This document shows, in pieces, positions 179 through 57,840 of a DNA stretch of 64,000 bases. Numbering within the stretch: position 1 is the first letter of the stretch; every line of letters starts with the position of its first letter. A model generated the notes under the pieces. It was not told where the DNA came from and made no database searches. It saw only the letters and a list, made by a program, of their open reading frames with translations. The stretch comes from Octopus sinensis (Eukaryota): NCBI RefSeq assembly GCF_006345805.1, contig NC_043018.1, positions 21,452,001 through 21,516,000 of the forward strand, given 5' to 3'. The translations under genes were made by a program, and so were the position numbers.

Positions 179-649
179 TATACATTGGCATTTAAAAAAA
201 CACCATATAAAGATTATCGTGTTTTTATTCCATATTTTGACGCCTGAAGTGATGGATATTGGCGTGACTGAAGACATAAATTTGATATTGTTCGAAATGA
301 CTTTTTTCTTATTACTAATTCACACATTTGTACGAACAACATGAATTGCATCGCATAAATTATATAGTTGATACACACACACACACACAGATGTGCGCGT
401 GTGTAAACAAGAGAGAAAGCGGTAAGGAGAACAAGCCGAGAAACAAAGAGAACGAGAGAAGAAAACGAAAGCTGGAGTAAACAAGTGTTGAAGGAGTTCT
501 CTTGATTACTAACACTATATCATCATCAACCAGTTTGGACTTTGCGCAAGAGAAAGTCTACTGAGCTTTTTATATAAATACCGTTCGAATCTGATAAGTA
601 TGTAACATTTAAATTATTCATTGTAGCTGTATGTGAATAAGTAATAGCA

Positions 650-1052
650 ATCATCATCATCATTGTTCGACCGTGGTCGAGACAATGGAATTTGCCATGC
701 TACGCCAGACTTCACGGTCCATCATGGCATTACGGAGGTCCTGTTGCTGGACGCCTGTATCTCTGGAGATTACATGAGGGTAGGAGAGTGTGCGCCCTCT
801 GGTATTGCGAGTAGATGGCTTCCAGAGGAGAAGAGTAGAAATTACTTCTTTTTCAGCTCTACAACAATGTCCAGCAAACTGGACTCTCCTACATGCCTGT
901 ATCCCTGGAGATTACATCAGGGTAGGAGAGTGTGCACCCTCTGGTATTGCGAGTAGATGGCTTCCAGAGGAGAAGAGTAGAAATTACTTCTTTTTCAGCT
1001 CTACAACAATGTCCAGCAAACTGGACTCTCCTACCTTTCACAAGGTAGGAGA
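650..1052 (-). mobile_element. RTE-clade LINE 3' fragment with internal 142-bp tandem duplication and (GAT)n tail
   Basis: Minus strand reads RRVQFAGHCCRAEKEVISTLLLWKP...YPDVISRDTGVQQQDLRNAMMDREVWR*, an RTE ORF2 C-terminus; duplicated unit starts at 753 and 895; foldback hairpin at the 5' junction (about 1023-1052). Confidence 0.75.
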
Positions 1053-1780
1053 GTAATAGCAATAGACAGAGTATGTTATGGTAATGATGATGGTGGCAGT
1101 GGTTGAGCTTAAGCCGTTTGTTGCCTGTTTGCATGTGTACAGTCCAAGATCCGCAAAGAGAGAGGATAACCGGAATGATTTACTGATTTTCACTTTACAT
1201 CTCATCGATTGTATTTGATGAAAGTGAATCATTCGAGCTTTTGTAGTGTTTGTTTTCTGGTTAATGCAAATCGGTTGCTAAGATGAAAATATTACCGCTG
1301 GACATTATTCCTATACGTTTTTCATTAGTTCCCGAAAGATGTTCTTATTTTCTAACTTTATGACGAGACATTCGCATCCACCAAGCGGCTAGTCTCCGCA
1401 ACAGAGCATGACTGTTGCTTCCTGCTCCATGTTAGAATATTTAGCCAGTTGTGCTTTAAGCGGGTTGCTGAAAGCAGAATCCCAGGATGGCAATGGCGTA
1501 GGTCGCAGGTCCAGGGGAGGTTGCTTTTAATGCTTGTTGCGGAATATGGACCCATGCATAATTTTCTTTTGGTATGAGACCTATACTCGGAGTACCTGTT
1601 CCTCAATTCTTTTCCAAGCTATTCCTCACCGAGTGCAGTTGCTGAAATACCTAATAGATAAAGGAAATAGGGATCCCATTAATGAAAACAGATCCGTAAT
1701 TTTCTGCTCTGTCAGTGTTGGAATGGAGAAAATATCGATTGCATGATTTTGTATGGGACGATCATATGACATAAGTCTGT

Positions 1781-1900
1781 CAGGTTGTACCCTCACCCTG
1801 ACCACGGCTTTCAACCGATTCTGATGAAACTTGACACACACATAGCCCAATGTCATAATTCAAAACTAACATAGCGAAAATTTTGAAAAGTTCCCCAGTT
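1781..1900 (+). mobile_element. Helitron family 2 fragment
   Basis: Inverted match to 3661-3778 of the complete element at 3402-3803. Confidence 0.7.
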
Positions 1901-2223
1901 TTTGGCTATAATGTTTATTCAGGAATTAGATTCCTGTGAAATGTGAAGGTAAGGCTGTTCTTGGATATAGAAAATAGGGAAAATATTTCTGACTGTACAT
2001 TTCACGCACAACATTTCGTCAAGTGCAAATGCGGCAAACCTGATGTAATTGTTTCGGGTGCAGAAATAAAAATATAGTTACAGAAGCCAGATACATTTGA
2101 AGTAAGAACATTTCATTCGCATTTAACAGTATGGAAAATATTTATGGATAAATGCTTCGAGACCTTCAACTAAATTATATATTTACATTAATACTTATAG
2201 CTATCGCTGCAGTAAGCTGTTTT

Positions 2224-2609
2224 GTGGAAGCACTCCGTCGGTTACGACGATGAGGGTTCCGGTTGATCCGAATCAACGGAACAGCCTGCTCGTGAAATTA
2301 ACGTGTAAGTGGCTGAGCACTCCACAGACACGTGCACCCTTAACGTAGTTCTCGGGGATATTCAGCGTGACACAGAGAGTGACAAGGCCGGCCCCTTGAA
2401 ATACAGGTACAACAGAAACAGGAAGTAAGAGTGAGAGAAAGTTGTGGTGAAACAGTACAGCAGGGATCACCACCATCCCCTGCCGGAGCCTCGTGGAGCT
2501 TTTAGGTGTTTTCGCTCAATAAACACTCACAACGCCCGGTCTGGGAATCGAAACCGCGATCCTATGACCGCGAGTCCGCTGCCCTAACCACTGGGCCATT
2601 GCGCCTCCA
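2224..2609 (-). mobile_element. tRNA-derived SINE family A, full length
   Basis: Head GGAGGCGCAATGGCCCAGTGG...GGTTTCGATTCC with A and B boxes; 14-bp TSD cagtaagctgtttt at 2210-2223 and 2610-2623. Confidence 0.9.
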
Positions 2610-2733
2610 CAGTAAGCTGTTTTACTAAATATATAAACGGTTAAGTTGAAAGCTAGGATTTTCATTGAAATAAATTTGAATATCTAAAATATCATTGCTG
2701 CCTAAATTTCAGTTGTACACCTTTGCGACTTTA

Positions 2734-3130
2734 TCTTTATATATAAAAGTAAGGTTGTGTGCTGTCTGTCTCCTACGATTTAGATTCCTAACTACTCCCA
2801 CATTTTGCGGTGCAGTGTAACCAAAAGCGGGTATCTTATAGTCGTGATTCATATCGAGCCGTTCTGGGTATTAGCGCGCGTCTACGCTGAGTCTACGATT
2901 TTAAAAATAATTTACCATCATTTTTTTCCATTTTAATGCATTTTTTCGCTATTATATAAGGGAAGTAACTCTCTAAAAATGTCTACGATGAGTCAACGAT
3001 TTAAAAAAATTACCATCATTTTTTTCCATTTTTAATGCATTTTTTTGCTATTTTTTGGCTATAACTCTCTAAAAATGCTTATATAGTTATTTCCCTTACA
3101 AACCCGAGCAACGCCGGGCGATACTGCTAG
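2734..3130 (+). mobile_element. Non-autonomous Helitron family 1, complete
   Basis: A|TC start, subterminal hairpin cccgagcaacgccggg (3103-3118), CTAG|T end, no TSD. Confidence 0.88.
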
Positions 3131-3194
3131 TTAAGAATAAAGCTTCCGTTTTTAATGACTCTCGTTGTTATATCTCTACATCAACAGGCGCATA

Positions 3195-3258
3195 ATGAAA
3201 AGCATCAGTGTCCTATTGCTTTGTGCATTCATTTCATACACCTTCGCGGATAAACAAA
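3195..3258 (+). CDS. Secreted cystine-knot (knottin/agatoxin-like) precursor, coding exon 1 (signal peptide)
   Basis: Acceptor caacag at 3187, ATG at 3195, MKSISVLLLCAFISYTFA-DKQ, donor A|gtaagt (phase 1). Confidence 0.75.
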
Positions 3259-3401
3259 GTAAGTATAATTAGAATTTTCTTGTGATTCACAGTCTTCTGA
3301 AATAAAGAGGGGGAAAAGAGGGAGGATAAAAAGGCGAAGAGAAGAAAAATGAATAACGTTACTTCGGCGGTCTTTCGGAGGTGACGCCTGTTTATTTGTA
3401 A

Positions 3402-3803
3402 CTAGCAGCATAGCCCTGTGTTGCCCAGGTATGTAAGAGCCCCTAGTATGCACCGACTAATCCCAATCTAGTCCTTTCCCTCTAGTGTGTAAGTTGCAAT
3501 GTCTTCTCTTCACTGGAATACGTCTGTATATACGATGTTCCTAGCTGTCCCTTTGGGCGATAAAAAGGTCGAGTTGTGTCCCCTAGACAGAAAATGTGTT
3601 GCATATAAAAAGCTTAGATTCTCGACCCCATGTCGAATTTATCGATTTTTTTTTTCAGAACTGGGGAACTTTTCAAAATTTTCGCTGTGTTAGTTTTGAA
3701 TTATGACATTGCGCTATGTGTGTGTAAAGTTTCATCAGAATCGGTTGAAAGCCGTGGTCAGGGTGAGGGTACAACCTGAAACTGCTGTTTATATAGAGAG
3801 AGA
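3402..3803 (-). mobile_element. Non-autonomous Helitron family 2, complete
   Basis: Minus strand: A|TC at 3803, hairpin cctgggcaacacagggc, CTAG|T at 3402. Confidence 0.85.
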
Positions 3804-4076
3804 TTACAGCTTTCAAATAACTCCATATTTATCTACACTACGCATGGACCCTATATTCGGAATTACGCTTGCTGATTAAACATTTAATTAACAAAGTTGC
3901 TGACCAATTCGTTTATATACAAATCGGGAGGACTTTTAATGGCGTGCTTGAACCTGTTACTGCTATTATCTACGATCGTTCAGTTTTTCAGTTGTCAGAC
4001 GAAGAATGGCGAATCTTCACTGATGACGGATTAATCTTTTGATATAAAAGAGGATTACTAATTACTGATTGGCACA

Positions 4077-4632
4077 AGGCCAGCGATTTCGTGGCAGATT
4101 TCGTCTGCCGTTACGTTCTGAGTTCAAATCCCGCCGAGGTCGACTTTGCCTTTCATCCTTTCGGGGTCGATAAATAAAGTACCAGTTACGCACTGGGGTC
4201 GATGTAATCGACTTAATACCTATGTCTGTCCTTGCTTGTCCCCTCTATGTTTAGGCCCCTGGGGGGTAATAAAGAAATAGGTATTTCGTCTGTCGTTACA
4301 TTCTGAGTTCAAATTCCGCCAAGGTCAACTTTGCCTTTCATCTTTTCGGGGTCGATAAATAAAGTACCAGTTTCGCACTGGGGTCGATATAATCAAATTT
4401 ATCAGTTTGTCCTCTCTGTGTTTAGCCCCTTGTGGGTAGTAAAGAAATAGGTATTTCGTCTGTCGTTACGTGCTGAGTTCAAATTCCGCCGAGGTCAACT
4501 TTGCCTTTCATCCTTTCGGGGTCGATAAATAAAGTACCAGTTTCGCACTGGGGTCGATATAATCGACTCAATCCCTTCGTCTGTCCTTGTTTGTCCCCTC
4601 TATGTTTAGCCCCTTCTGGGCAGCAAAGAAAT
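4077..4632 (+). mobile_element. SINE family B, head-to-tail trimer
   Basis: About 170-bp units with B box GAGTTCAAATTCC, restarting at ggtatttcgtctg. Confidence 0.85.
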
Positions 4633-4843
4633 ATATACCTAGAATATCACTAATACAACAGATGTCCTCATTTGTTTCAAAAGATTGTAATTCCTGGTGA
4701 GGGCCAGGTACGGAATAACCATTAACGAGTCCCAAGGTGAAACACTGCAGCTTGTCGGTCTCCATCCAGAAGAGGGCTGTATCTCACATGGTTAATTGTA
4801 CGTAGGTCGTTCCAGAGTAGGAAGCCTACAGAAATTCTTCATA

Positions 4844-5226
4844 GACGCAGGAGTGGCTGTGTGGTAAGTAGCTTGCTAACCAACCACATGGTTCCGTGTT
4901 CAGTCCCACTGCGTGGCATCTTGGGCAAGTGTCTTCTGCTATAGCCCCGGGCCGACCAATGCCTTGTGAGTGGATTTGGTAAACGGAAACTGAAAGAAGC
5001 CTGTCGTATATATATATGTATGTGTGTGTGTTTGTCCCCCTAGCATTGCTTGACAACCGATGCTGGTGTGTTTACGTCCCCGTCACTTAGCGGTTCGGCA
5101 AAAGAGACCGATAGAATAAGTACTGGGCTTACAAAGAATAAGTCCCGGGGTCGAGTTGCTCGACTAAAGGCGGTGCTTCAGCATGGCCGCAGTCAAATGA
5201 CTGAAACAAGTAACAGAGTAAAGAGT
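4844..5226 (+). mobile_element. CORE-like tRNA SINE family C with internal microsatellite
   Basis: Head GCAGGAGTGGCTGTGTGGTAAG, CORE-like ttgggcaagtgtcttct, tail (aaagagt)n; many copies in the window. Confidence 0.85.
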
Positions 5227-5477
5227 ATATATGCTCTAAAGAATAAAGTTAAGAACATTGTATATACTGAAGTTCTGTAAATGTTTTATAATTTTCGTAC
5301 AATACATATTGTCTATATTACTTTTTGTATTTAGATATTCTATATAATACCTTGTAACAACTTTTATTGTAAGGAAAACGGGTATTACAATAGATGCCAA
5401 TATGTGCCTTATGAATACATTTCAACACTTCAACACCGTACAAACCGGGTCGAGGGGGGGGGGCGCTAGTATATATT

Positions 5478-5514
<37 letters not shown>

Positions 5515-5518
5515 AGTG

Positions 5519-5557
<39 letters not shown>

Positions 5558-5568
5558 TAACATACATA

Positions 5569-5805
5569 TTGGAGACCACAGATTACAAAAGGTGGAGAAG
5601 TTTACCTATCTGGGCTCTACCGTCACCTACAACCTATCCCTTGACGCTGAGCTCAATATACGCATTGGCAAGGCAGCTGCTGCGATGGCCCAACTCTCCA
5701 AACGGGCTTGGGACAACAATAAGCTGACCAAGACCACGAAAATGAAGATCTACCAGGCATGTGTACTCAGCACTCTACTGTATGGAAGTGAGACCTGGAC
5801 GCTAT
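5569..5805 (+). mobile_element. RTE/BovB-type LINE ORF2 fragment
   Basis: KVEKFTYLGS...DAELNIRIGKAAAAM...KMKIYQACVLSTLLYGSETWT; flanked by (TA)n. Confidence 0.85.
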
Positions 5806-5816
5806 ATATATATATA

Positions 5817-5850
<34 letters not shown>

Positions 5851-5858
<8 letters not shown>

Positions 5859-6344
5859 AAAATAGTAAAGTGTGAAAAAACGACAGAAGGCTTAAATGTT
5901 AAAAAATATATATATTTGTGTCAAAATGTCTGGAGAATATTGGAAAAATTTTTTTCCTTTCCTTAAAATGACATAATTTTAAAATTTTTAAAGAAATTAC
6001 CGGTTTCGCGTGTAGCTTTTCAAATTTCTTGTGACGTTATGTTTATATTGCATGGAATTATCGTTGTTTTTATTTCCAGGAGATTTCTAAATAAGGGGAG
6101 GTAGTGAGTGATCTCCTGGAAATAAAAACAACGATAATTCCATGCAATATAAACATAACGTCACAAGAAATTTGAAAAGCTACACGCGAAACCGGTAATT
6201 TCTTTAAAATTTTAAAATTATGTCATTTTAAGGAAAGGAAAAAAATTTTTCCAATATTCTCCAGACATTCTGACACAAATATATATATTTTTTAACATTT
6301 AAGCCTTCTGTCGTTTTTTCACACTTTACTATTTTCTTATATAT
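5851..6344. repeat. Near-perfect foldback (about 234-bp arms, 26-bp spacer); probable Penelope-like terminal repeat
   Basis: 5851-6084 is the reverse complement of 6111-6344; abuts (TA)n; each arm carries a hammerhead fold. Confidence 0.8.
6165..6204 (+). ncRNA. Minimal type-I hammerhead ribozyme, U3:A8 core variant (mirror copy on minus strand at 5991-6030)
   Basis: AAGAAAU-UUGAAAA-GC/UACAC/GC-GAAA-CCGG-UA-AUUUCUU: 7-bp stem I, palindromic stem III ACCGGU, GUA cleavage triplet. Confidence 0.7.
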
Positions 6345-6379
6345 TCACCCACGTGCTTTACCAAACAAACTTTCTTATC

Positions 6380-6425
<46 letters not shown>

Positions 6426-6902
6426 AGAAATTGTACAAAATGATGTATGCATTCAGTGAAAAGAAGACAAAAAGATTCTTCCGATGTGACAAGACACCTT
6501 TGATGCAAATCTGATGAGGTGCCTCTCCTATGTCTAAAACTACAAACATTACGTGAATTTTCATTCAGAATTTTTGCGTAACTTGGCTCTGCAAATAGAT
6601 CTGATACAGAAACAATTGTAACGAAACCTTAAACATGTGTTAAAAGAATATTTTTTGTTGTCTTCTTCTTTTCACTGGAGTATTTACTCTCCGCCAAACA
6701 TAATTTTACGGTACAATCGTCGTGAAACTTGCATGTTCTACACCTGTGGAATTACGGGTTTGGCCTGGAAGCCAACAGTGTTGACAGGCCAGTATTCGGA
6801 ACGAGTGCTTCTCTGGAAAGAGCCCAACTTCACACCCTTCCTAACCTTAGACTTTTGTTATACATACATACATACATATTTTTTTCTCTCCTTGTTTTCT
6901 AT

Positions 6903-6944
6903 GTCCCTTTCTGTAGAAGAGCGTAGGCTCGAAACGTAAAAGAC
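6903..6944 (+). ncRNA. Hammerhead-like motif in a repeat terminus (atypical core CUGUAGAA)
   Basis: CUGUAGAA-GAGC/GUAG/GCUC-GAAA-CG-UA-AAAGAC; second copy at 38444-38485 in the same approximately 150-bp repeat. Confidence 0.4.
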
Positions 6945-7672
6945 TTTTTTCTATTCCTGAGCGTTATACAAATACATCTGTTTGTTTTGTACACCACCTG
7001 TCTTCGTCTTCTGTTGTTTTTTTCGTAAACTCTCCCTATATATATATATATAAACCGTATGTAAGCCATGCAAAGTCAAGAACATTCTATTCGATAGGCC
7101 CGTGCTTCGATTCCTTTTCGCCGTAACTAGGTAGCGGCGCGCTACAAAGTGAATCGAATGAGTGTAGGCATTACCCCTAATGCTTCTTCTAATGTTGCTG
7201 GTTCGTTGGAAGAATTTCATTGGTCAACAGTATCACAACGCTGAACGCAGAGCTTTAGCGTGTGAGTATATTTCTTAATGTGGACTCGACTCCAAACGGA
7301 CAGTGCATAGTGCCAGTGAAAAGTTACAATAGACAAGATATGAAACATTACTTTTAATGATAATAATTCAGTTGTTTATGATATTGGTAATATCGACATA
7401 TATCAAGATGAATGCTACGTTCAGCTCTTTGGAATACAGTAAATGTACGACAGCTGCTGATTTTGTCTGAATGAATGTCAAGCAAAATGCAACTGGTGTT
7501 TAAAAATTAATTAAATTAAATTGATTAAAAGTTACGGAGATGTACTTGCATAGCAAGTGATTTAATCTGAGATCGTGTGCTGAAACGAAAACAATTGCAG
7601 CGTGGAAGGTGTTTATAAGCCATTTAAGAAACACACAAAAGCCGTTCGATTCACTTCAACATTTAAGTTTAA

Positions 7673-7723
7673 TTTATCAAAATATTTTCGTCGCTTTAAG
7701 ACCGCGACCTGTTCACTGACAAA
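7673..7723 (-). ncRNA. Minimal type-I hammerhead ribozyme, G3:C8 core variant
   Basis: Minus strand: UUUGUCA-GUGAACA-G-GUCGC/9nt/GCGAC-GAAA-AUAU-UU-UGAUAAA; palindromic AAUAUU stem III. Confidence 0.6.
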
Positions 7724-8359
7724 AAATTAATTAAAAATTATCCTAAAAATACGATACTAATTATTTAACAGTATTTCGCCCGGGAATCTCAAAAGTTTGT
7801 GACATTCGTCTCGTTTTATTCATGACTATCGGAAATACCATATTCCTCCTCATACATTGGGGTTAACTTTACTATCGTTTATGTCCAAAATAGCCATCAC
7901 TACAGTGGTCAGCCATATAAACTGTAGGTGAGAGGAAATGTGAGTTCCAGTCATCACGATGCTGCATCTTTTGTCAGACGATATAATTATAAGTAAATTC
8001 CGGTAATCTCCGGCAAATTCCGACAATTTACGGAAATCTTTTTTCCCAAAAATTCACAAAAATTTTTGAAACTTTCCCCCAAAAAATTTTTGTAAATTTT
8101 TGAAAATTTTCCCCAAACATATTTGAAAATTTATCCAAAAAATTTTAGAAAATTCTCCCCATATAAATTTTGAGGAAAAGTTTGAAATATTTTCAAAAAT
8201 TTTTGGAAAAAATTTTCAAAAATTTTCAAGGAAAATTTTCACAAATTTTTGAGTAAAATTTTCAAAATTTTGGGGGAAATTTTCAAAACGTTTTGGGGGA
8301 AAATGAAATGTTTGCTGAGCGCTACATGGTATTTTGTTTAAGTCTAATTTTTCTTTCAG

Positions 8360-8420
8360 ATGTTACTCAACGATATCAACAAAGAGGAGCTAACGTAAGT
8401 TTGAGTAAAGTGACTAAAAG
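8360..8420 (+). CDS. Knottin precursor coding exon 2 (propeptide)
   Basis: ttttctttcag acceptor, 61 nt phase 1 to 2, (N)VTQRYQQRGANVSLSKVTK, donor AG|gtaaga. Confidence 0.7.
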
Positions 8421-8479
8421 GTAAGAAATACATATCTGCATCTCATATTTATTTAATTTACTATTGGCAAAGAGGTAAG

Positions 8480-9075
8480 GCAGCGAGCTGGCAGAAACGT
8501 TAGCACGCCGGGCGAAATGCGTAGCCGTATTTCGTCTGCCGCTATGTTCTGGGTTCAAATTCCGCTAAGGTCGACTTTCGGATCGATTAAATAAGTACCA
8601 GTTACGCACTGGGGTCGATATAATCGACTTAATCTCTTTGTCTGTCCTTGTTTGTCCCCTCTATGTTTAGCCCCTTGTGGGCAGTAAAGAAATAAGAAAC
8701 GTCACGCCGGATGAAATGCTTAGCGGTATTTCGTCTACCGCTACGTTCTGAGTTCAAATTCCTCTAAGGTCGACTTTCGGATCGATTAAATAAGTACCAG
8801 TTACGCACTGGGGTCAATATAATCGACTTAATCTCTTTGTCTGTCCCCTCTATGTTTAGCCCTTTGTGGGCAGTAAAGAAATAAGAAACGTCACGCCGGA
8901 TGAAATGCTAAGCGGTATTTCATCTACCGCTACGTTCTGAGTTCAAATTCCACCGAGGTCGACTTTGCCTTTCACCCTTTCAGGGATCGATAAATTAAGT
9001 ACCAGTTGCGTACCGAGGGTAATCTAATCGACTGACCCCGTCCCCAAAAATTTCGGGCTTTGTTCCTAGAGTAGA
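8480..9075 (+). mobile_element. SINE family B tandem array (3 units)
   Basis: Repeated B box and body; units restart at agaaacgtcacgcc. Confidence 0.85.
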
Positions 9076-9766
9076 AAAGAGAATTGACAAAGCGGTAAGC
9101 TAGCAGAATCATTAGAATAGGGAGGACCATTTCTTCCAGGTTTCGGGTCGATGAAATGCCAGTTGAGAATTAGCGTCGATAGAATAAATTTGCACCCTCC
9201 ATCAAGGTTTGAGGTCTTGTGCCTCTTGTAGAAAGGTTATTAGTATTGGCGCAATTATATTCTGGGACTCTTTCTAAATTATACTTTTTATTTCTTTTAT
9301 GTGTTTCAGTCATTTGACTGCGGCCATGCTTGAGCATCGCCTTTAGTCGAACGAATCGATCCCAGGACTTATCAACAATTACCTTTTCTTTCTCTACTCT
9401 CCAAAAAGGAACCACCTGACCACCATGTTTCTAAAACTACCCATCCTTTATCTTCCATTCGCTTGGGTATTTCAGCTACTGTTAATGATATCAAATTTAC
9501 CTTCAGCTCGTGTTTCGTGTCCTTCTACATATATTTCCCCAAATATATGTAGAAAGAGTTGAGCCTTGCTCGAGGACACGAACCGCTACCGGGAATCGAA
9601 CTGAGGACCTTAGGATCGTGAACAAAATACCCTAGCCAGTAACCATGTACCTACACACACATAAATGCATATGTATATTAAATAGATAGATAGATATGCA
9701 ATGTGAATTGATATTTAATATTTGATAGCATTCCTTTGTATTTTCTTCTTCCTTCTTTATTTGCAG

Positions 9767-9983
9767 TAAGAACGGTAAGAGCATGTATGATGAATGTACA
9801 GGAGATTATTGTTATCTACACGAGCTTATACCACGCCGCCAGTGCTGTCAAAATTTAGTATGTGTTTGTAGTGTTTTAAGGCATAACTGCTGGTGTAGTT
9901 CACAAAATGTGATTCATGTGATTAATAACGGCATAATCCAGACTGTAGCCTCTATCCTGAGCTCCCTCGTAATATCATATTGA
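9767..9983 (+). CDS. Knottin precursor coding exon 3 (8-Cys domain plus hydrophobic tail, stop)
   Basis: Long polypyrimidine acceptor ending at 9766; phase-2 frame open to TGA: KNGKSMYDECTGDYCYLHELIPRRQCCQNLVCVCSVLRHNCWCSSQNVIHVINNGIIQTVASILSSLVISY*; AATAAA near 10224 and 10320. Confidence 0.75.
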
Positions 9984-10540
9984 CATTTCACCCGTGTCGT
10001 GAGTATGGAATATAGATAACAGTCGTCGGGTAGTTGACAAGCAAGAAGAAAAATGGCGGCATCACGATGATACAGCATTAAATCTATTCAGCTTTAGCAG
10101 CAATGCGTACGCGATATCAATACACGTAAATTCAACTACTACTTACGTTTACTAATATTACTATACATATTGATACTATCACAGATTACCAAATACTATA
10201 ATGATAAATCTAACAGCATCAATAAACATCAAAGAAACTGAACAGATTACACTTCCGGGTAGGATTTTGCTTCATAATTTCCGGTGGAAAAAAGTAATTT
10301 TTGCATGAAGAAGACTGTAAAATAAAATAATATTTCAAGCTGTTTAAGAGCAAAGTAAAGCTAATTAATTACCTAATGCATAAAGTAAAATTACTTACAA
10401 TTACAATATATTATAATTGTTATAGAAATTATTGTAATGATTTCTAATGGAACCAAAATTAAATAAATATATCAACTAAGACAATATATCAATGTTTCTT
10501 TTCTTCCTTGCTGCAACTGTTTTTTTTTTTTCATATGATA

Positions 10541-10925
10541 CTAACAGTATCGCCCGGCGTTGCTCGGGTTTGTAAGGGAAATAACTATATAAGCATTTTT
10601 AGAAATGTAAAGTATAATAGCCATCTCAATATGGCTAACCACAAAGGGGGGGGTGTTACTGTAGCTTTTTACGTTCTGAGATTTAATAATAAATTTTTAG
10701 AGAGTTACTTCCCTTATATATGCCAAAAATGCATTAAAAATGGGAAAAATTGATGGTAATTTTTTTTTAAATCGTAGACGCGCGCTAATACCCAGAAGGG
10801 CTCGATATGAATCACGACTATAAGATACCCGGTTTTGGTTAAACTGCACCGCAAAATGTGGGAGTAGTTAGGAATCTAAATAGTAGGAGACAGACAGCAC
10901 ACAACCTCTCTTTTATATATAAAGA
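10541..10925 (-). mobile_element. Non-autonomous Helitron family 1, complete
   Basis: Reverse-complement match to 2734-3130; 3' end TTAG|T (CTAG mutated). Confidence 0.85.
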
Positions 10926-11399
10926 TATATGGTTACCTTTAGATTTTATATTGTAATGGCACGCTATGTTATTGCAACAAATTGTCATTATTAGCGTCGC
11001 TTAATACCTGGATCTCCCATCTCAGCAGATATATGATGATAGTCGAATGAATTATGATTACTTTGTCTTTTGACATACATAGTGCGTCTGTCATTGCCAC
11101 ATTAGTTAATATGTTCTTGTGAGTTTAAGATACTTGGGCTTGATTCGATTATGATTTGGCTGTTTCGCGTTTAATGTAACTATTGTAGCTAAAAATCCAG
11201 AACCGCTATATATTGACTGATGATACAGTATGGACGGATTTTCGAAGTCCAATAATACCCTGCACACCTATTTAATTATGAAGATTTACAAACATACTTT
11301 CTCAGTGAAACTCAATATACCTATCATTATAGATAATACCAAATGTTCCTTTTCGGACTTTTCATAATGTGATACAGGTCTTTGGTATAGAAATTGCAT

Positions 11400-11536: not shown

Positions 11537-13552
11537 AGGGGGTAGAAGGCAACTGGACGTTTCTAAGGAACAACCTGCTGAGAGCCACTAACCAGATCTG
11601 TGGCTGGTGCAAAGTCCCCTCAAGACCCAAAATAACGTGGTGGTGGAACAATGTTGTAGACAGGGCTATTAGAGAAAAGAGACAGGCTTGGAAGGACTGG
11701 AAGAATCTTGTTAGCAGGGAATTGTATCAGACTGCCAAAAGAGAAGCTAGGAGACAGGTTTATTTAGCCAGAGGGGAAGCAGATAAGAAAAAATTTGCCA
11801 ATGATCTGCGCCATGAGGACCAAAGACTTGAGGTATTTCGTGTTGCAAGACAGTGTGTGAGAGAGAATCGTGATGTGGTAGGAGAGAAATGTGTTTGCAT
11901 GGATGATGGTTCACTTGCGCTAAATGAGGATGCAAAGAGAGAGGTGTGGAGATGCCACTATGAAAGGTTGCTGAATGAAGAAAATGGGATAAAGAGAGTC
12001 TGCCAAATGTCAACCCAACAGAGGGACCAGCTATCCGAGTTGACAGTTCCTTGGTAATTAAGGCAATTAGAAGCATGAAGACAGGGAAAGCCCCAGGCCC
12101 ATCAGGAATTACTGCAGAGATGCTTAAAGTGTCTGGTAGTGTCGGCTATAGCCTAGTCACCCGTATAGTTAACCAGGTAATACACGGAGTCATACCCAAT
12201 GACTGGTGTAGCAGCATAATAGTCAACTTCTACAAAGGTAAAGGTGATGCCTTAGATACAAATAATTACAGAGGTATCAAGCTGTTGGATCAGGTAATGA
12301 AGGTTACGGAGAGGGTCATAGCCCAACTAATTAGAGAGAGTTAGTTTGGATTCGTGCCAGGGAAAAGCACCACTGATGTCATATTCCTGGTAAGACAGCT
12401 GCAGGAGAAATATCTAGCCAAAGATAAGCCCCTGTACCTGGCTTTCGTCGACATGGAGAAAGCCTTCGACAGAGTCCTCCGATCCCTTATCTGGTGGTCA
12501 ATGAGGAAACTAGGGATAGATGAATGGTTAGTGAGAGCTGTGCAAGCCATGTACAGGGACGCTGCTAGTAAGGTGAGGGTTGGCTACGAGTACAGTAAAG
12601 AATTCCGGGTAGAGGTAGGGGTCCACCAAGGTTCAGCCCTCAGCCCCCTCCTATTTATCGTAGTCCTCCAGGCAATAACGGAGGAATTCAAGACAGGATG
12701 CCCCTGGGAGCTCCTCTATGACTGCTGAGGATATGCGTAAGCTCGCAAGAAATGAAGCCAGTATGCTCCGATGGATGTGTAATGTCAGTGTTCATACTCG
12801 ACAGAGTGTAAGTACCTTGAGAGAGAAGTTGGACCTAAGAAGCATCAGTTGCGGTGTGCAAGAGACGTTTGCGCTGGTATGACCATGTGGCGAGAATGGA
12901 TGAAGATAGTTGTGTGAAAAAGTGCCACACCCTAGCTGTTGAGGGAACCTGTGGAAGAGGCAGACCCAGGAAAACCTGGGATGAGGTGGTGAAGCACGAC
13001 CTTCGAACTTTAGGTCTCACCGAGGAAATGACTAGAGACCGAGACCTTTGGAAGTATGCTGTGCTTGAGAAGACCCAGCAGGACAAGTGAGACCATCACC
13101 CATGGCCTCAGTCCACTTATGCATACCTTTCCTTCTTGGGACACAAAATCCAACTTGTGAAGACCTGTTGAGGCAAGTGAAAATCAATCAAATCAAAATC
13201 GATCAACATGAATGGAAATTGCAGCTGTGATACCAGTGCTGGTGGCACATAAGAGAACCATCCGAACGTGGACGTTGCCAGTGCCGCCCTGACTGGTTTC
13301 CGTGCCGGTGGCACATAAAAAGCACCATCCGACCGTGGCCGTTTGCCAGCCTCGTCTGGCACCTCTGCCGGTGGCACATAAAAAGCACCCACTACACTCA
13401 TGGAGTGGTTAGCATTGGGAAGGGCATCCAGCCATAGAAACATTGCCAGATCAGACTGGGCCTGGTGCAACCTTCTGGCTTCCCAGACCCCAGTTGCACC
13501 GTCCAACCCATGCCAGCATGGAAAGCGGACGCTAAACGATGATGATGATGAT
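11537..13552 (+). mobile_element. 5'-truncated, degenerate RTE-clade LINE (ORF2, 3'UTR, (GAT)n tail)
   Basis: TWWWN tether; RT motifs KAPGPSGIT, NYRGIKLL, FVDMEKAFDRV, GVHQGSALSPLLF; C-terminal GRGRPRKTW...DRDLW; frameshifts and a deletion at YADD (about 12722). Confidence 0.93.
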
Positions 13553-13815: not shown

Positions 13816-14686
13816 ATCATCATCATCATTTAGCGTCTGCTCTCCATGCTAGCATGGGTTGGACGGTTCAACTGGGGGTCTGTGAAGCTGGAAGGCTTCG
13901 TCAGGCCCAGTCAGATCTGGCAGTGTTTCTACGGCTAGATGCCCTTCCTAACGCCAACCACTCCATGAGTGTAGTGGGTGCTTTTACGTGCCACCGACAC
14001 GGGGGCCAGACAGAGCTGGCAACGGACACGAACGGATGGTGCTTTTACGTGCCACCGACACGGGGGCCAGACAGAGCTGGCAACGGACACGAACGGATGG
14101 TGCTTTTACGCATCACCAACACGGGGGCCAGACAGAGCTGGCAAACGGCTACGAAATGGATGGTGCTTTTTACGTGTCACCGGCACGGGGACAGGCGAGG
14201 CTGGCAACGGACACGAACAGATGGTGCTTTTACGTGCCACTGACACGGGGGCCAGACAAAGCTGGCAAACGGGCACGAACGGATGGTGCTTTTACGTGTC
14301 ACCGGAATGGGGCCAGGCGAAGCTGGCAACGGAGGCGAACGGATGGTGCTTTTACGTGCCACCGACACGGGGGCCAGACAGAGCTGGCAAACGGCCATGA
14401 ACGGATGGTGCTTTTTACGTGTCACCGGCACGGGGCCAGGCGAGGCTGGCAACGGACACGAATGGATGGTGCTTTTACGTGCCACCGACACGGGGGCCAG
14501 ACAGAGCTGGCAAACGGCCACAAACAGATGGTGCTTTTACGTGTCACCGGCACGGGGCCAGGCAGAGCTGGCAACGGACACGAACGGATGGTGCTTTTAC
14601 GTGCCACCGACACGGGGGCCAGACAGAGCTGGCAAACGGTCAGGAACGGATGGTGCTTTTACATGTCACCGGCAGGGGGGCCAGTA
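13816..14686 (-). repeat. RTE 3' end with its approximately 61-bp UTR repeat amplified into a minisatellite (about 12 units)
   Basis: (ATC)n tail complement, then units ttttacgtgccaccg...cggatggtg from 13981 to 14680 in two alternating variants. Confidence 0.88.
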
Positions 14687-16846: not shown

Positions 16847-17502
16847 CCCTTTAGTGTTTAAACCGGCTGTATCTGGCCCAAATATTCTACACATTTTATG
16901 CTCAAACTGGCCAGAACCAGCATCTCACACCTACCCTGCAATGTCATTCTAAAAATAAGCAATTATATCTTTCCCATCTTGAAGCTACAAAATAATATCA
17001 GAAACTTTGTTTAATCCTCTCATGACTGTATTTATTTTGAGATGATCTGTGTTTCTTTCAATTACGTTAAATATAACAAAGACTTTAGTAAAATAACTTA
17101 GTCATCATTCAGCTAGTGTTAGGAACATAAATTGTGACTAAGGCTTGATGGGAGATTTTAATTCAAAACTTATGAAAACAAGACATTAGTACTACAGAAA
17201 AAATTGGTGGGCGTGCACACATACATACTAACACACATCACATCATTTTTATAAAATTCAAAGTTTCATTTTCTAAATACATTTGTAATAAGTGTCCTCT
17301 CTCCTCACCCACGGAAATACCGTGTCGACAGCAAATTTCGATATAATCAGAATCTACATTACCTGTTAAGTATTTGAAGAAAATTTCATTAAAAAAAAAT
17401 TCAATTTTTCTGGAAGTCGGTGGGGCATTTTTGTGTAGATATGCCCAATATATATATATATATATATATTACTTTTGACAAATTAATCTGAACACCAAAG
17501 GG
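16847..17502. mobile_element. piggyBac-like MITE, composite
   Basis: TTAA|CCCTTT...AAAGGG|TTAA (TTAA at 16843 and 17503); contains a segment duplicated at about 18500-18705. Confidence 0.7.
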
Positions 17503-20897: not shown

Positions 20898-21647
20898 TTA
20901 GACTCGTAGGTGATATCTGGGCCGACGTCGTTTCGTGGTGCAGGTGGTATTTTTCAGCCAGACTTCAGCATTTTCTCTCTCTGATTTCACAACTGAACTG
21001 AAATCGAATTCGATTAGAGTCGGTACAGTGGTCAGAACTGTAACTCTATAATGTTTAACTTTCTCGATGGGATTGCCGTGAAGGGTGAGCTTCTTGAGGT
21101 TTGTCATCGGCCGAAACTTTTCCACTTCACTCAAATTCTCTAAACAGTTGCCATGCAAGTAAAGTATTTGCAAACAGTGAAATTCGTTTAGTTCTTCTGG
21201 TACATTAGTCAATAGGTTAAACGATAAATCCAACCAAGACAGTTGTAACGGTCGGAGGAAGAGAGAAAACACGATCTGTTTAAGTCCGACAATCGTTTCC
21301 AAAGAATTATTATTCAAACGGAGACACTTACTGCGAGATTTCCGATGTCTTTTCCCAGAAGAGTCCGCAAAACAATTAATAGGTTTCGCCGTGTTCGGAA
21401 AATCTTCCTCGTCTTCCTCGTGGTCAATGTCGCCTATAGTAGTTGCTTTTGCTTGCTTTATTTCATCGATCAACTCTTCGATATCATGTGGGCTTCGACA
21501 AGACTCTTCGCGTTTATCATCGCCGATGATATCCGAGACATACTTCAAACTTCGAAAGGAGAAATCAAGCGGCTTCAAGTCATTACCATAGGATTTGTTT
21601 ATCGTCTTAAGTGGTTGTTTTCTGTTTGGTATAGATTTTAAAGCCAT
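20898..21647 (-). CDS. LRRC51: Leucine-rich repeat-containing protein 51, single coding exon, 249 aa
   Basis: PLDFSFRSL, CLRLNNN, SWLDLSFNLL, ILYLHGN, KLTLHGNPIE..KHYR..VL, FDFS.V.K.ER..AEVW match the family; splice acceptor ttctttcag ends at 21650, 2 nt before the ATG. Confidence 0.88.
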   Translation of the reverse strand: MALKSIPNRKQPLKTINKSYGNDLKPLDFSFRSLKYVSDIIGDDKREESCRSPHDIEELIDEIKQAKATTIGDIDHEEDEEDFPNTAKPINCFADSSGKRHRKSRSKCLRLNNNSLETIVGLKQIVFSLFLRPLQLSWLDLSFNLLTNVPEELNEFHCLQILYLHGNCLENLSEVEKFRPMTNLKKLTLHGNPIEKVKHYRVTVLTTVPTLIEFDFSSVVKSERENAEVWLKNTTCTTKRRRPRYHLRV

Positions 21648-22439
21648 CACTGAAAGAACGAAAGAACTGCATGTAAGTTATACGCACCTATGTAAAACTT
21701 ATATTTACACCTGTGTGTATACGTACGTATACACATGTGTGTATACGTATGTATAAAATATTTGAAATATTCACAGTTCACTCATGGTCCAGCTTGAGTG
21801 AGTATTTTTTTTGTGTTGTGAAGGGAGTTATTTTTCGTCCCTCCACATATAATTCTAAATTCTGGTTTCCTTGTGCTACTTGATGCCAAAAATACCTTAC
21901 TCCATGCACACCTGAGGGCGTGACGTAGTGGAAGAAGTATTGGTTATGGTGTACAGCTTCCCAAATATTTGAATCTCAAACAACCACAGAAACAACAAAG
22001 TGAACTTTCAAATACCAGACTTACTTGAGAGAAAAGTTTATCGTTTAAACAAAACGAAAAGGTAAAAATAATCGTTTAAAAGTTAATAAAGAAAACTAAG
22101 TTGTGCTTACTGGAATGTATGTGTGATTTAAATCCTTTTTTTGGTGTTTGGCAAAAAGTAATGGAAACGTTGATATACTCTGGACTGGCACGCAGGATTG
22201 TTTTGAAGTTTAAAAAGTTTTTGTCTTATTCATCCAAATTTGAAAAAGAGCTGAAGATAAAGGCTTATATATTCCCATGTGTGGACACAAATGGTTTAAA
22301 GTCGTTAATCCAAAGTAATTAGACAGAGACAAATAGTATTATTTTAAAGGGAGCAAAGGAGAATGAATTAAACTCATAAACAGCAATGTTGTGAATGACA
22401 ACGGTCGTGATATGTTAATTAGAAAAATTAAGACGAGGA

Positions 22440-22538: not shown

Positions 22539-23097
22539 GAGCTGGCAGAAACATTTAGCACGCCGGGGCGAAATGCTTTGCGGTATTTCGGCTGCCGTTA
22601 CGTTGTGAGTTCAAATTCCGCCGAGGTCGACTTTGCCTCTTTCATCCTTTCGGGGTCGATAAAACTAAGTACCAGTTACGCACTGAGGTCGATGTAATCG
22701 ACTTAATACCTATGTCTGTCCTTGTTTGTCCCCTCTGTGTTTAGCCCCTTGTGGGTAATAAAGAAATAGGTATTTCGTCTGCCGCTTTCATCCTTTCGGG
22801 GTCGATTAAATAAGTACCAGTTACGCACTGGAGTCGATATAATCGACTTAATCGGTGTGTCTGTCCTTGTTTGTCCTCTCTGTGTTTAGCCCCTTGTGGG
22901 TAATAAAGAAATAGGTATTTCGTCTGCCGTTACGTTCTGAGTTCAAATTCCGCCGAGGTCGACTTTGCCTTTCATCCTTTCGGGGTCGATAAATTAAGTA
23001 CCAGTTACGCACTGGGGTCGATGTAATCGACTTAATACCTATGTCTGTCCTTGTTTGTCCCCTCTGTGTTTAGCCCCTTGTGGGCAATAAAGAATTA
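22539..23097 (+). mobile_element. SINE family B trimer inside a single 17-bp TSD
   Basis: ggtaactacggaaggtc at 22522-22538 and 23098-23114. Confidence 0.9.
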
Positions 23098-24264: not shown

Positions 24265-25470
24265 ACACACAGACATATACATACATTCACATGCATGCAT
24301 TTATATATATATATACACATGCATACATACACACATACATACATATATGCATGCATGAATACATACATACACACATACATACATACATACATACATACAT
24401 ACATACACACATACACACATACATACATACATACATACATACATACACACACACATACATACACACATACATACATACATACACACACATACATACACAC
24501 ATACATACATACATACACACACACATACATACACACATACATACATACATACATACACACATACATACACACATACATACACACATACATACATACATAC
24601 ATACACACATACACACATACATACATACATACATACATACATACATACACACATACATACACACATACATACATACATACACACCACATACATACACACA
24701 TACATACATAATACATACACACATACCACATACACACACATACATACATACATACATACACACATACATACACACATACATACATACATACATACACACA
24801 TACACACATACATACATACATACATACATACACACACACATACATACACACATACATACATACATACATACACACATACACACATACATACATACATACA
24901 TACATACACACATACACACATACATACATACATACATACATACATACATACACACATACACACATACATACATACATACATACATACATACACACACACA
25001 TACATACACACATACACACATACATACATACATACATACATACATACACACATACATACATACACACATACATACACACATACATACATACATACATACA
25101 TACATACACACATACTACATACATACACACATACACACACATACATACTACACACATACATACAATACATACATACATACACACATACACACATACATAC
25201 ATACATACATACATACATACACACATACATACACACATACACACATACATACATACATACATACATACACACATACACACATACATACATACACACATAC
25301 ATACATACACACACACATACATACACACATACATACATACATACATACACACATACATACACACATACATACACACATACATACATACATACACACACAT
25401 ACATATACATACAAACATATACACACACACATACATACATGCATAAATACATACATACATGCATATACTA
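24265..25470. repeat. Giant compound (CATA)n/(CACATA)n microsatellite, about 1.2 kb
   Basis: Direct inspection; source of the spurious MYVC/HTYI ORFs. Confidence 0.97.
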
Positions 25471-32309: not shown

Positions 32310-33260
<951 letters not shown>

Positions 33261-33935: not shown

Positions 33936-34341
33936 TACTTGACACTCCAGCTAGTAATGTTCAGAAATTTTGCTAATAATATTATTTCAGAGCAAAAATT
34001 TCACAAGAATTCTTCCACGGATTGTAGAAACAATGCTATACATCTGTTTTGTAGAATATTTTCCTTTAGTCTTTAAAACATGGTAGATATTGAGGATGCT
34101 TCATCTGTCATTTGATGTTCTGAAATTATAGAGAAACGACAGTGTAAGATGTTGAGGCTACTTAAAAAATACAGATTCATTTCTATTGAGACAAACTGTA
34201 GAAACAAACATTTATCTTAACAAACTGAGCTGGATGCCAACACTTCCATAAAGAACTGCTGATCTCTCAAAGTAGATGGAAAAAGTGAAAGAAGACAAGG
34301 AAGAAGTGCTGATGAGCTAACTCAAGATGCTGAACCAGGCA

Positions 34342-35133
34342 TCTTGGAGTTTACTGTATCACCTGAAATGTGAATCTTGGAGTTTACTGTATCACCTGAA
34401 ATGTGAATCTTGGAGTTTACTGTATCACGTGAAATGTGAATCTTGGAGTTTACTGTATCACCTGAAATGTGAATCTTGGAGTTTACTGTATCACTTGAGA
34501 TGTGAATCTTGGAGTTTACTGTATCACGTGAAATGTGAATCTTGGAGTTTACTGTATCACCTGAAATGTGAATCTTGGAGTTTACTGTATCACGTGAAAT
34601 GTGAATCTTGGAGTTTACTGTATCACGTGAAATGTGAATCTTGGAGTTTACTGTATCACCTGAAATGTGATTCTTGGAGTTTACTGTATCACCTGAAATG
34701 TGAATCTTGGAGTTTACTGTATCACGTGAAATGTGAATCTTGGAGTTTACTGTATCACCTGAAATGTGAATCTTGGAGTTTACTGTATCCCGTGAAATGT
34801 GAATCTTGGAGTTTACTGTATCACCTGAAATGTGAATCTTGGAGTTTACTGTATCACGTGAAATGTGAATCTTGGAGTTTACTGTATCACCTGAAATGTG
34901 AATCTTGGAGTTTACCGTATCACCTGAAATGTGAATCTCGGAGTTTACTGTATCACCTGAAATGTGAATCTTGGAGATTACTGTATCACCTGAAATGTGA
35001 ATCTTGGAGTTTACTGTTTCACCTGAGATGTGAATCTTGGAGTTTACTGTATCACCTGAAATGTGATTCTTGGAGTTTACTGTATCACCTCAAATGTGAA
35101 TCTTGGAGTTTACTGTATCACCTGAAATGTGAT
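34342..35133. repeat. 33-bp minisatellite, 24 copies
   Basis: Unit tcttggagtttactgtatcacctgaaatgtgaa; open as (SWSLLYHLKCE)24 on + and (HISGDTVNSKI)n on -. Confidence 0.97.
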
Positions 35134-51244: not shown

Positions 51245-51342
51245 CTGGAAAAAAAGAAGAAAAAAAACCAATTAATCTTTCCAATTAAATTAATTAAATC
51301 GGTAGATTTAAACAACAAAATGTAATTCAATTTATCTGAAAA

Positions 51343-57084: not shown

Positions 57085-57840
57085 TCATCATCATCATCGT
57101 TTAACGTCCGCTTTCCATGCTAGCATGGGTTGGACGGTTCAAAAGGGGATCTGGGAAGCCAGGAGGTTGCACCAGGCTCCAGTCTGATCTGGCAGTGTTT
57201 CTACAGCCGGATGCCCTTCCTAATGCCAACCACTCCGTGAGTGTAGTGGGTGCTTTTTACATACCACCGGCACAGGTGCCAGGGGAGGCTGGCAATGGCC
57301 ATGATCGGTTTGTGCTTTTTTATGTGCCACCGGCAAAGGTGTCAGGGGAGGCTGGCAATGGCCACGATCAGTTGGTGCTTTTTTATGTGCCACCAGCACA
57401 GGTGCCAGGGAAGGCTGGCAATGGCCACGATCAGTTGGTGCTTTTTTATGTGCCACCGGCACAGGTGCCAGAGAAGGCTGGCAATGGCCACGATCAGTTG
57501 GTGCTTACTTACGTGCCACCGGCACAGGTGCCAGGGGAGGCTGGCAACGGCCACGATCAGTTGGTGCTTTTTTATGTGCCACCGGTACAGGTGTCAGGGG
57601 AGGCTGGTAACAGCCATGATCAGTTGGTGCTTTTTTATGTGCCACCGGCACAGGTGCCAGGGGAGGCTGGCAATGACCACAATCAGTTGGTGCTTTTTTA
57701 TGTGCCACCGGCACAGGTGCCAGGGGAGGCTGGCAATGGCCACAATCAGTTGGTGCTTTTTTATGTGCCACCGGCACAGGTGCCAGGGGAGGCTGGAAAC
57801 AGCCACGATCGGTTGGTGCTTTTTACGTGCCACCGTCATG
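57085..57840 (-). repeat. RTE 3' end with a 63-bp minisatellite (about 9.5 units)
   Basis: Unit gtgcttttttatgtgccaccggcacaggtgccaggggaggctggcaatggccacgatcagttg. Confidence 0.88.

Follow-up and report, generated by a model that had tools for sequence, protein, structure and literature searches.

The 64,000-nt window of the Octopus sinensis genome analysed here contains, at positions 3195-9983, a real three-exon gene that encodes a 113-aa secretory precursor (Table 1). A first-pass annotation had proposed this gene from its splice sites, its intron phases (1 and 2) and its 113-aa product, and our own reading of the sequence, together with scripted splicing, reproduced that model in every detail: the spliced exons total 342 nt and translate, up to the stop codon, into the same 113-aa peptide that had been given. 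The proposed cysteine pattern was likewise verified in the translated product, and the list of open reading frames shows just the last 66 aa (9783-9983), as had been pointed out.

Table 1. Features of the three-exon gene, in window coordinates
Feature	Position	Strand	Description
Exon 1	3195..3258	+	64 nt; ATG at 3195; M1-Q21 and base 1 of N22; GTAAGT follows
Intron 1	3259..8359	+	5101 nt, phase 1; donor GTAAGT, acceptor tttttctttcAG
Exon 2	8360..8420	+	61 nt; rest of N22 to K41 and two bases of S42; preceded by tttttctttcAG
Intron 2	8421..9766	+	1346 nt, phase 2; donor GTAAGA, acceptor tttatttgCAG
Exon 3	9767..9983	+	217 nt including TGA stop; last base of S42, K43-Y113
8-Cys knot domain	9795..9896	+	C52-C85; Cx4Cx10CCx4CxCx6CxC
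C-terminal tail	9897..9980	+	S86-Y113, SSQNVIHVINNGIIQTVASILSSLVISY; last 16 residues hydrophobic

Exon 1 encodes the signal peptide, MKSISVLLLCAFISYTFA, which by the -3/-1 rule is likely cleaved after A18 (T at -3, A at -1). Exon 2 encodes a variable pro-region with two N-glycosylation sequons, N22-V-T and N33-V-S, and intron 2 then interrupts codon AG/T (S42), between K41 and K43. Exon 3, preceded by a polypyrimidine tract and CAG, carries the eight cysteines (C52, 57, 68, 69, 74, 76, 83 and 85), after the last of which the protein continues for 28 residues, ending in ...LVISY.

The gene has a syntenic orthologue in O. bimaculoides, LOC128250516 (P0001, isoform X2), which is annotated at a collinear locus and has exons of 64, 49 and 217 nt, identical splice-site contexts and 66% identity. 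Whether another cephalopod has a Cys-conserving orthologue, a point on which the first-pass annotation had made its model depend, is answered by this locus, which keeps all eight cysteines. Exons 1 and 3 are equal in length in the two species, and exon 1 shares 68-81% identity with its counterparts across the O. bimaculoides family. Exon 2 measures 61 nt here versus 49 nt in the orthologue, an in-frame difference of 12 nt, and intron 1 measures 5101 nt versus 1393 nt, having grown through insertions of repeats and retroelements; the DNA flanking the two orthologues is 87-92% identical. Since an annotated collinear gene with matching exons and splice contexts and an in-frame indel exists in O. 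bimaculoides, the gene is not a chance product. It had been described as hidden, which fits in part: the O. bimaculoides orthologue and four paralogues are annotated, although under the label "uncharacterized protein".

Between the orthologues, coding sequence diverges faster (83.8% nucleotide identity) than introns (87-92%), and the overall dN/dS is ~1.0, an estimate based on just 53 substitutions. By region, dN/dS reaches 2.3 for the pro-region but only 0.38 for the tail, where four of the 28 residues differ between orthologues, and the substitutions are unevenly spread (17/36 versus 4/28 in the tail, Fisher p = 0.007).

The gene is a member of a small family of tandem duplicates that has been seen only in Octopus. 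O. bimaculoides has five annotated loci, and two further copies of exon 3, both unannotated, lie in a 45-kb cluster; O. vulgaris has two gene models; an exhaustive search of 1.84 billion protein representatives returned no family members beyond these two species. The earlier term "cephalopod knottin" is too broad for a family found only in Octopus. All eight cysteines are invariant across nine family sequences, and cysteines and tail are conserved in at least eight paralogous copies. While the loops and the pro-region evolve rapidly, the tail is conserved: paralogue identity is 57% in the tail versus 14% in the loops, and, cysteines and signal peptide aside, the tail is the family's most conserved part. 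The tail seen in the first-pass annotation is real, and it is conserved between orthologues as well as paralogues. In three paralogues (P0002, P0003 and P0005), KR lies ahead of the knot, 5-6 residues from the start of exon 3, whereas the P0001/window pair lacks a dibasic site, the window reading AAA AG/T AAG (K-S-K, with Ser as the split codon). In O. bimaculoides, one pair of signal and pro-region exons is followed by three alternative knot-encoding last exons, which might diversify products through 3' exon choice. The protein collection holds no transcript-derived copy of any family member, and because every entry stems from genome annotation, the annotated isoforms are the sole basis for expression.

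Spiralian CCWamides and the agatoxin-like peptides of arthropods (ALP, U8-agatoxin type) are orthologous (Thiel et al. 2021, PMC8557429) and make up an ancient protostome signalling family for which neither receptor nor function is known so far (PMC8557429, PMC13311285). We lean towards reading the knot domain as a divergent branch of this CCWamide/agatoxin-like peptide (Toxin_9-type) family. In support of this idea, hhalign aligned the octopus family with spiralian CCWamides at a probability of 95.6% (E 1.3e-8, 40 columns, all eight cysteines aligned). The alignment scored 36.9, whereas shuffling the other columns around fixed cysteines gave a mean of 16.6 and at most 31.1 (z ~5); none of 150 shuffles reached the observed score, whether or not the cysteines were fixed. 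With single sequences, BLASTP of the window protein against octopus CCWamide gave E 0.02, and the sole Pfam match of the window protein was Toxin_9 (PF02819; 13.0 bits, E 0.13). This score and that of P0004 (14.4 bits) are below the gathering threshold of 21.3 bits, which canonical CCWamides pass at 23.5-25 bits; neither protein matched any other knottin model in Pfam. Furthermore, the motif CCxGLxCxC is common to the octopus family and mollusc CCWamides.

The precursors and genes are also alike. In both groups, three exons encode a short precursor of about 90-115 aa; exon 1 supplies the signal peptide and the last exon the 8-Cys peptide, and the pro-peptide is not conserved. Both groups have the framework C-x4/5-C-x9-13-CC-x4-6-C-x-C-x5/6-C-x-C. 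The intron phases, 1 then 2, are those of the published Lottia and Notospermus CCWamide genes, and a phase-2 intron at the boundary of pro-peptide and mature peptide is a conserved trait of CCWamide/ALP genes (PMC8557429). In CCWamide/ALP precursors, the C-terminal peptide is freed at a basic site that is located at the last intron or interrupted by it, and this peptide has an amidated aromatic C-terminus soon after Cys8 (W/F-G-[K/R] or end) and often an aromatic residue between Cys6 and Cys7. Unlike these, the window protein and P0001 have both lost the dibasic site, and all octopus family members lack the amidated aromatic C-terminus (...LWG[KR]) and any Gly-basic signal after Cys8; where CCWamides have a short amidated end, the octopus family has its conserved hydrophobic tail of 28-30 aa. 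The Cys6-Cys7 segment of the window protein, SVLRHN, has neither an aromatic residue nor the CCWamide NLW motif, and P0002 and P0004 have Phe there. Canonical CCWamide is slowly evolving, whereas the octopus family is fast-evolving and tandemly expanded, and Octopus retains a separate canonical CCWamide gene (O. vulgaris CCWamide). Against the kinship, small Cys-rich domains can converge.

The first-pass annotation had likened the peptide to agatoxins and to AgRP. Agatoxin-type peptides are indeed its closest sequence relatives, given the Toxin_9 and omega-agatoxin matches, both below significance, and the hhalign result, and the spacing CCx4CxCx6CxC is common to both. Omega-agatoxin IVA/IVB chains were the only PDB matches of the single protein (E 0.1-0.9, not significant) and ranked second to fourth in the PDB search with the family profile. 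Their last six cysteines (PDB 1IVA, 1AGG, 2NDB) have the identical spacing CC-x4-C-x-C-x6-C-x-C and, like the window protein, they extend C-terminally past the last cysteine; however, their tail has about a dozen residues versus 28, there is no sequence similarity outside the knot, and they are spider venom-gland products from a different phylum. The likeness to AgRP, which has a CxCx6CxC-like segment inside its cystine knot, found no support: six family members gave no match to Agouti (PF05039) in Pfam even at E<=10, and the agouti domain, a vertebrate family, has a 10-Cys framework as against only eight cysteines here. Knottins have disulfides I-IV, II-V and III-VI, the third of which threads a ring, together with a beta-hairpin. 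AF2 predicted a beta-hairpin on VCVCS/NCWCS (pLDDT ~78) in a model of low overall confidence (pLDDT 55 with the tail, 67 for the core alone), and Foldseek found no PDB match for this low-confidence model.

GPI-anchored proteins carry an N-terminal signal peptide and, near the C-terminus, a triad with small residues at omega and omega+2, then a polar spacer and finally a hydrophobic stretch. The hydrophobic stretch of the octopus tail spans ~14-16 aa at the extreme C-terminus, with no cytoplasmic residues (Kyte-Doolittle means of 1.9-2.5 for the best 15 residues and 1.2-1.9 for the best 19), and it could direct GPI attachment or form a short anchor helix lined with Ser/Thr. One candidate omega site, SSQN, lies right next to the last knot cysteine (Cys85), and Q or N in its omega+2 position makes it a poor GPI site; another, NNG, has good residues and no spacer. 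The tail is also far more strongly conserved than one would expect of a GPI signal and nothing more.

We consider it rather probable that this gene, the orthologue of LOC128250516, is a functional secretory-precursor gene descended from the CCWamide/ALP family, in which a conserved tail has replaced the amidated end. The precursor would consist of a signal peptide, a short pro-region that evolves fast and can be glycosylated (encoded by exon 2 and the beginning of exon 3), the knot and the tail. It would enter the ER and lose the signal peptide after A18, and four disulfides of presumed knottin topology would make the knot; the tail may keep the knot at the membrane, where its variable loops may act locally on a putative channel or receptor, with target and tissue both conjectural. 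We further speculate, with much less confidence, that CCWamide duplicates in Octopus took on a conserved GPI/anchor tail in place of the amidated end and became membrane-tethered and cell-autonomous, their diversified loops conferring different channel/receptor specificities. Lynx1/Ly6-uPAR prototoxins are GPI-anchored endogenous modulators of ion channels with a toxin fold. Lynx1 has a three-finger fold unrelated to knottins, so any likeness would lie in the concept alone, that is, a disulfide-rich toxin-type domain with a signal peptide and a hydrophobic C-terminal segment able, perhaps, to retain it at the cell surface; GPI anchoring, which experiments have established for Lynx1, is hypothetical for the octopus family.

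Another reading, possible if unlikely, is that the gene encodes a soluble secreted peptide of venom/saliva, antimicrobial/defence or pheromone/reproductive type, whose tail is a propeptide or sorting signal removed in maturation, or else a hydrophobic, membrane-partitioning extension of the mature peptide. Tandem duplication, lineage restriction, constant cysteines with hypervariable loops, faster divergence of coding sequence than introns and a pro-region omega above 1 favour a toxin- or defence-type peptide, as this pattern is the usual signature of such families. The KR processing site that paralogues retain before the knot and the alignment of PDB omega-agatoxin chains to a few residues beyond the last cysteine point in the same direction. 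However, no basic or other recognisable cleavage site lies between knot and tail, a discarded propeptide is unlikely to be the family's best-conserved segment, and literature searches turned up no such octopus knottin from salivary glands and no mention of these loci.

It is also conceivable, though we judge it still more doubtful, that the cysteine framework is convergent and that the knottin was born in Octopus, with no descent from CCWamide/agatoxin-like peptides. Secreted proteins in general often have a phase-1 intron after the signal peptide, every single-sequence test was below significance, and the window protein lacks both the defining C-terminus and the Cys6-Cys7 NLW motif. Against this idea, the hhalign signal survives when only the non-cysteine columns are shuffled, CCxGLxCxC recurs in mollusc CCWamides, exon number and exon roles are the same, the phase-2 intron lies just ahead of the mature peptide, and Toxin_9 is the only knottin model matched.

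Finally, we regard it as highly improbable that the locus is decaying or non-functional, or that it is an artefact of gene prediction common to two genomes: the overall dN/dS of 1.0, the lack of transcript-derived entries in the protein collection and the loss of the paralogues' KR site in this orthologue pair would fit it, but the open reading frame with its start and stop, the eight cysteines and all four splice dinucleotides are retained (P = 0.0006-0.008 for frame, cysteines and splice dinucleotides under neutral drift simulated at the local divergence), the length difference in exon 2 preserves the frame, the tail shows low omega within an uneven spread of substitutions, and cysteines and tail are conserved among the paralogous copies.

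The CCWamide/ALP offshoot that we favour, an Octopus branch that is tandem, fast-diversifying and equipped with a novel, strongly conserved hydrophobic C-terminus, would illustrate how a neuropeptide scaffold can be repurposed. Should the tail prove to tether the knot at the membrane, octopus would provide the first natural example of a tethered knottin modulator, and such octopus knots would be the knottin counterpart of Lynx1 prototoxins and a natural version of engineered "tethered toxins". If, instead, the peptides are secreted, they would be candidates for a family of octopus toxins, defence peptides or pheromones that has yet to be described. On the practical side, cephalopod annotations miss, or leave uncharacterised, small multi-exon Cys-rich genes, and the octopus branch could offer a handle on the targets of the entire CCWamide/ALP family.

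Joining the three exons of the window gene (intron phases 1 and 2) gives a 342-nt coding sequence that translates into 113 amino acids plus a stop, identical to the three-exon product proposed in the first-pass annotation, which is thereby confirmed. Only the last 66 amino acids of this protein (9783-9983) appear in a mechanical ORF list. Its mature part contains eight cysteines, at residues 52, 57, 68, 69, 74, 76, 83 and 85. The spliced protein had one match in a collection of 5.8 billion sequences, namely P0001, the Octopus bimaculoides orthologue annotated as "uncharacterized protein LOC128250516 isoform X2" (109 amino acids), which aligns along 100% of the query at 66% identity and retains every one of the eight cysteines. 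A protein identical to that of the window was absent from the same collection, indicating that the copy in the source genome is unannotated or that its annotation is not public. The gene was thus rightly described as hidden with respect to its source genome, but not beyond it, since P0001 is annotated in O. bimaculoides. The exons of the orthologue measure 64, 49 and 217 nt; their phases agree with those of the window gene, their splice-site contexts are nearly identical, and their lengths differ only by 12 nt in exon 2, a change that keeps the frame. Furthermore, in neutral-drift simulations run at 10-16% divergence, the start, open frame, stop, eight cysteines and four splice dinucleotides jointly survived in 0.06-0.8% of trials. 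We conclude that the window gene is a real gene. All family members in the collection derive from genome annotation (NCBI, UniProt) and none from assembled sequencing runs; the numbered isoforms in the NCBI models imply putative RNA support for the family genes. A perfect GTAAGT within exon 2 is conserved in O. bimaculoides. Its use as a donor would bring a TAA of exon 3 into frame, with a truncated protein as the outcome; the site may reflect unproductive alternative splicing.

Coordinates of the window gene and of other features of the window
Feature	Position	Strand	Details
Exon 1	3195-3258	+	64 nt; ATG at 3195; GTAAGT directly after
Exon 2	8360-8420	+	61 nt; tttttctttcAG before, GTAAGA after
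GTAAGT within exon 2	8395-8400		perfect
Exon 3	9767-9983	+	217 nt; long pyrimidine tract and CAG before; TGA end
SINE-like element	4098-4566, 8504-8966, 22634-22929, many more sites		about 170-200 nt; core ...GTTCTGAGTTCAAATTCCGCCGAGGTCGACTTTGCC...
LINE-type retroelement fragment	11722-13090	+	broken reverse-transcriptase frames (Pfam RVT_1)
Two related GC-rich minisatellites	13977-14684, 57245-57835		61/122-nt and 63-nt units, about 9-12 copies
Leucine-rich-repeat open frame	20898-21650	-	250 aa; Pfam LRR_9, LRR_4, LRR_8
(ATAC)n microsatellite	24277-25465		1.2 kb
84-nt repeat	32315-33230		11 copies
33-nt tandem repeat	34341-35132		highly regular, 24 copies, 95% matches
A20-type zinc finger open frame	49602-51284	-	560 aa

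A profile search identified four further O. bimaculoides loci on the same chromosome (LOC128250514, -536, -517 and -541; P0002-P0005), to which HMMER over all 1.84 billion representative proteins added only two "hypothetical predicted proteins" of O. vulgaris, one of them a chimeric model joining several tandem copies. Judging from these searches, the family appears to be small and restricted to Octopus; literature searches on the LOC identifiers, and on cystine-knot or salivary peptides of octopuses, gave no relevant result. The eight cysteines are common to all members, as are a signal peptide (consensus MK.ISVL.FC.F.SY) and a tail (consensus SSQN.IHV.N.G..QTV...L.F.VNLPSY), and the pro-region is variable, with a K-R end shortly before Cys1 in most paralogues. 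In the window gene, intron 2 splits AG/T between two lysine codons, which is what an eroded arginine (AG/R) cleavage codon might look like. Coding identity between the orthologues is 83.8%, below that of most surrounding non-coding blocks (mostly 87-92%). For this pair, dN/dS is 1.0 over the whole coding sequence, 1.4 in the signal peptide, 2.3 in the pro-region, 0.75 in the knot with its invariant cysteines included, and 0.38 in the tail. Amino-acid changes between the orthologues affect 17 of 36 pre-knot and loop positions versus 4 of 28 tail positions (Fisher p = 0.007), and paralogues share 57% identity in the tail and 14% in the loops. The resulting picture is one of fixed cysteines and tail, with loops and a pro-region that change at or above the neutral rate; it is suggestive, on small counts and short of proof, of diversifying selection.

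The last 14-16 residues of the tail are hydrophobic, with a best Kyte-Doolittle mean of 1.9-2.5 over 15 residues and of 1.2-1.9 at best over 19, and this stretch is the very end of the protein, with no residues after it. A classical transmembrane helix would fit such a tail less well than a GPI signal or a marginal anchor. A GPI signal, however, meets several difficulties: the candidate site SSQN, put forward in the first-pass annotation, adjoins the knot and would have Q or N as its omega+2 residue; the N-N-G triad, which looks better, has no room for a spacer; and the conservation of the tail far exceeds what a signal needs. In the AlphaFold2 model of the exon-3 peptide (pLDDT 55) the tail forms a low-confidence helix; the model of the knot alone has a pLDDT of 67. 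Foldseek searches of these models against the PDB gave no usable match (best E above 6 for the exon-3 peptide, none for the knot alone). An amphipathic-helix reading was set aside: the hydrophobic moment was only weakly above that of shuffled sequences, a fraction of 0.04-0.18 of which equalled or exceeded it. The main rival to retention at the membrane is that the peptide is secreted in soluble form, its tail being either a propeptide or an extension that partitions into membranes. With modest confidence, we favor the reading that the tail may serve to keep the knot at the membrane.

L001, the locus of P0001 on O. bimaculoides chromosome CM046622.1, is collinear with window positions 194-11,209, and its flanks and introns are about 84-92% identical to those of the window at the nucleotide level. 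Together with the matching exons and the neutral-drift result, this collinear annotated orthologue indicates that the window is the locus orthologous to L001 in a species closely related to O. bimaculoides; it is less likely that the window gene is instead an unannotated old duplicate. In O. bimaculoides, LOC128250514 and LOC128250517 lie less than 45 kb downstream of the orthologue on the opposite strand. Because collinearity ends at 11,209, this paralogue cluster, just downstream there, is not in the window, and tblastn with all members matched the window gene only, with no second family copy in the 64 kb. L001 also contains two unannotated knot-plus-tail copies of exon 3 (16974-17177 and 21955-22089, both on the minus strand; CM046622.1 about 29,191,082-29,196,290). 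Counting the last exon annotated for LOC128250514, three knot-encoding exons thus follow one exon-1/exon-2 pair, all three on the same strand. The extra copies may serve as alternative 3' exons or may be dead.

As expected for octopus DNA, the window is repeat-rich, with 38% G+C. The LINE-type fragment starts about 500 bp past the end of collinearity, and the SINE-like element is present in both introns of the window gene and also in the O. bimaculoides loci. Long spurious ORFs arise on both strands of the two minisatellites, and long artefactual ORFs from the 33-nt, 84-nt and (ATAC)n repeats. The best matches to the A20-type frame were mollusc OTU domain-containing protein 7B (identity at most 44%), and the protein search returned no cephalopod protein among them; this frame probably represents the large final exon of an octopus OTUD7B-like deubiquitinase. 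The leucine-rich-repeat frame is likely an exon of a gene for such a protein.

Spiralian CCWamide neuropeptides have been shown to be orthologous to the agatoxin-like peptides (ALPs) of arthropods in a previous study (Thiel et al. 2021, PMC8557429), whose supplement provides mollusc sequences, including a canonical O. vulgaris CCWamide, and documents for Lottia a phase-1 intron followed by a phase-2 intron. The structure of the window gene agrees with that of CCWamide/ALP genes, including this order of phases. In Pfam, the window protein matched Toxin_9 ("Spider toxin") alone, below threshold (13 versus 21.3 bits), and in the PDB omega-agatoxin IVA/IVB chains alone (E 0.1-0.9), which ranked second to fourth with the family profile (E 0.3-0.5). 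Since canonical CCWamides score 23.5-25 bits and so exceed the Toxin_9 threshold, the sub-threshold Toxin_9 matches seen with the window protein point toward the CCWamide family. Moreover, hhalign aligned 23 spiralian CCWamide mature regions with nine octopus-family sequences over 40 columns across all eight cysteines (probability 95.6%, E 1.3e-8, score 36.9). This score was reached in 0 of 150 controls with all core columns shuffled (mean 9.3, maximum 15.9) and in 0 of 150 with only non-Cys columns shuffled (mean 16.6, sd 4.1, maximum 31.1), so that non-Cys residues, for example in CCxGLxCxC, carry signal. Pure convergence of the octopus family with CCWamide/ALP seems unlikely. The agatoxin likeness first proposed from the DNA thus drew support from the profile alignment and from the sub-threshold Toxin_9 and omega-agatoxin matches; the accompanying relationship to AgRP/agouti was rejected, as a Pfam Agouti search was empty even at E<=10.

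Unlike CCWamide, however, the window protein has neither an amidation signal nor an aromatic end, extends for 28 residues after Cys8 and has no NLW-type aromatic in the Cys6-Cys7 loop. In addition, the KR site is lost in the window/P0001 pair, the octopus family falls under the Toxin_9 threshold, and canonical CCWamide is kept as a separate gene in Octopus. In view of these departures, we class the octopus family as a putative divergent offshoot of CCWamide/ALP, and not as CCWamide proper.
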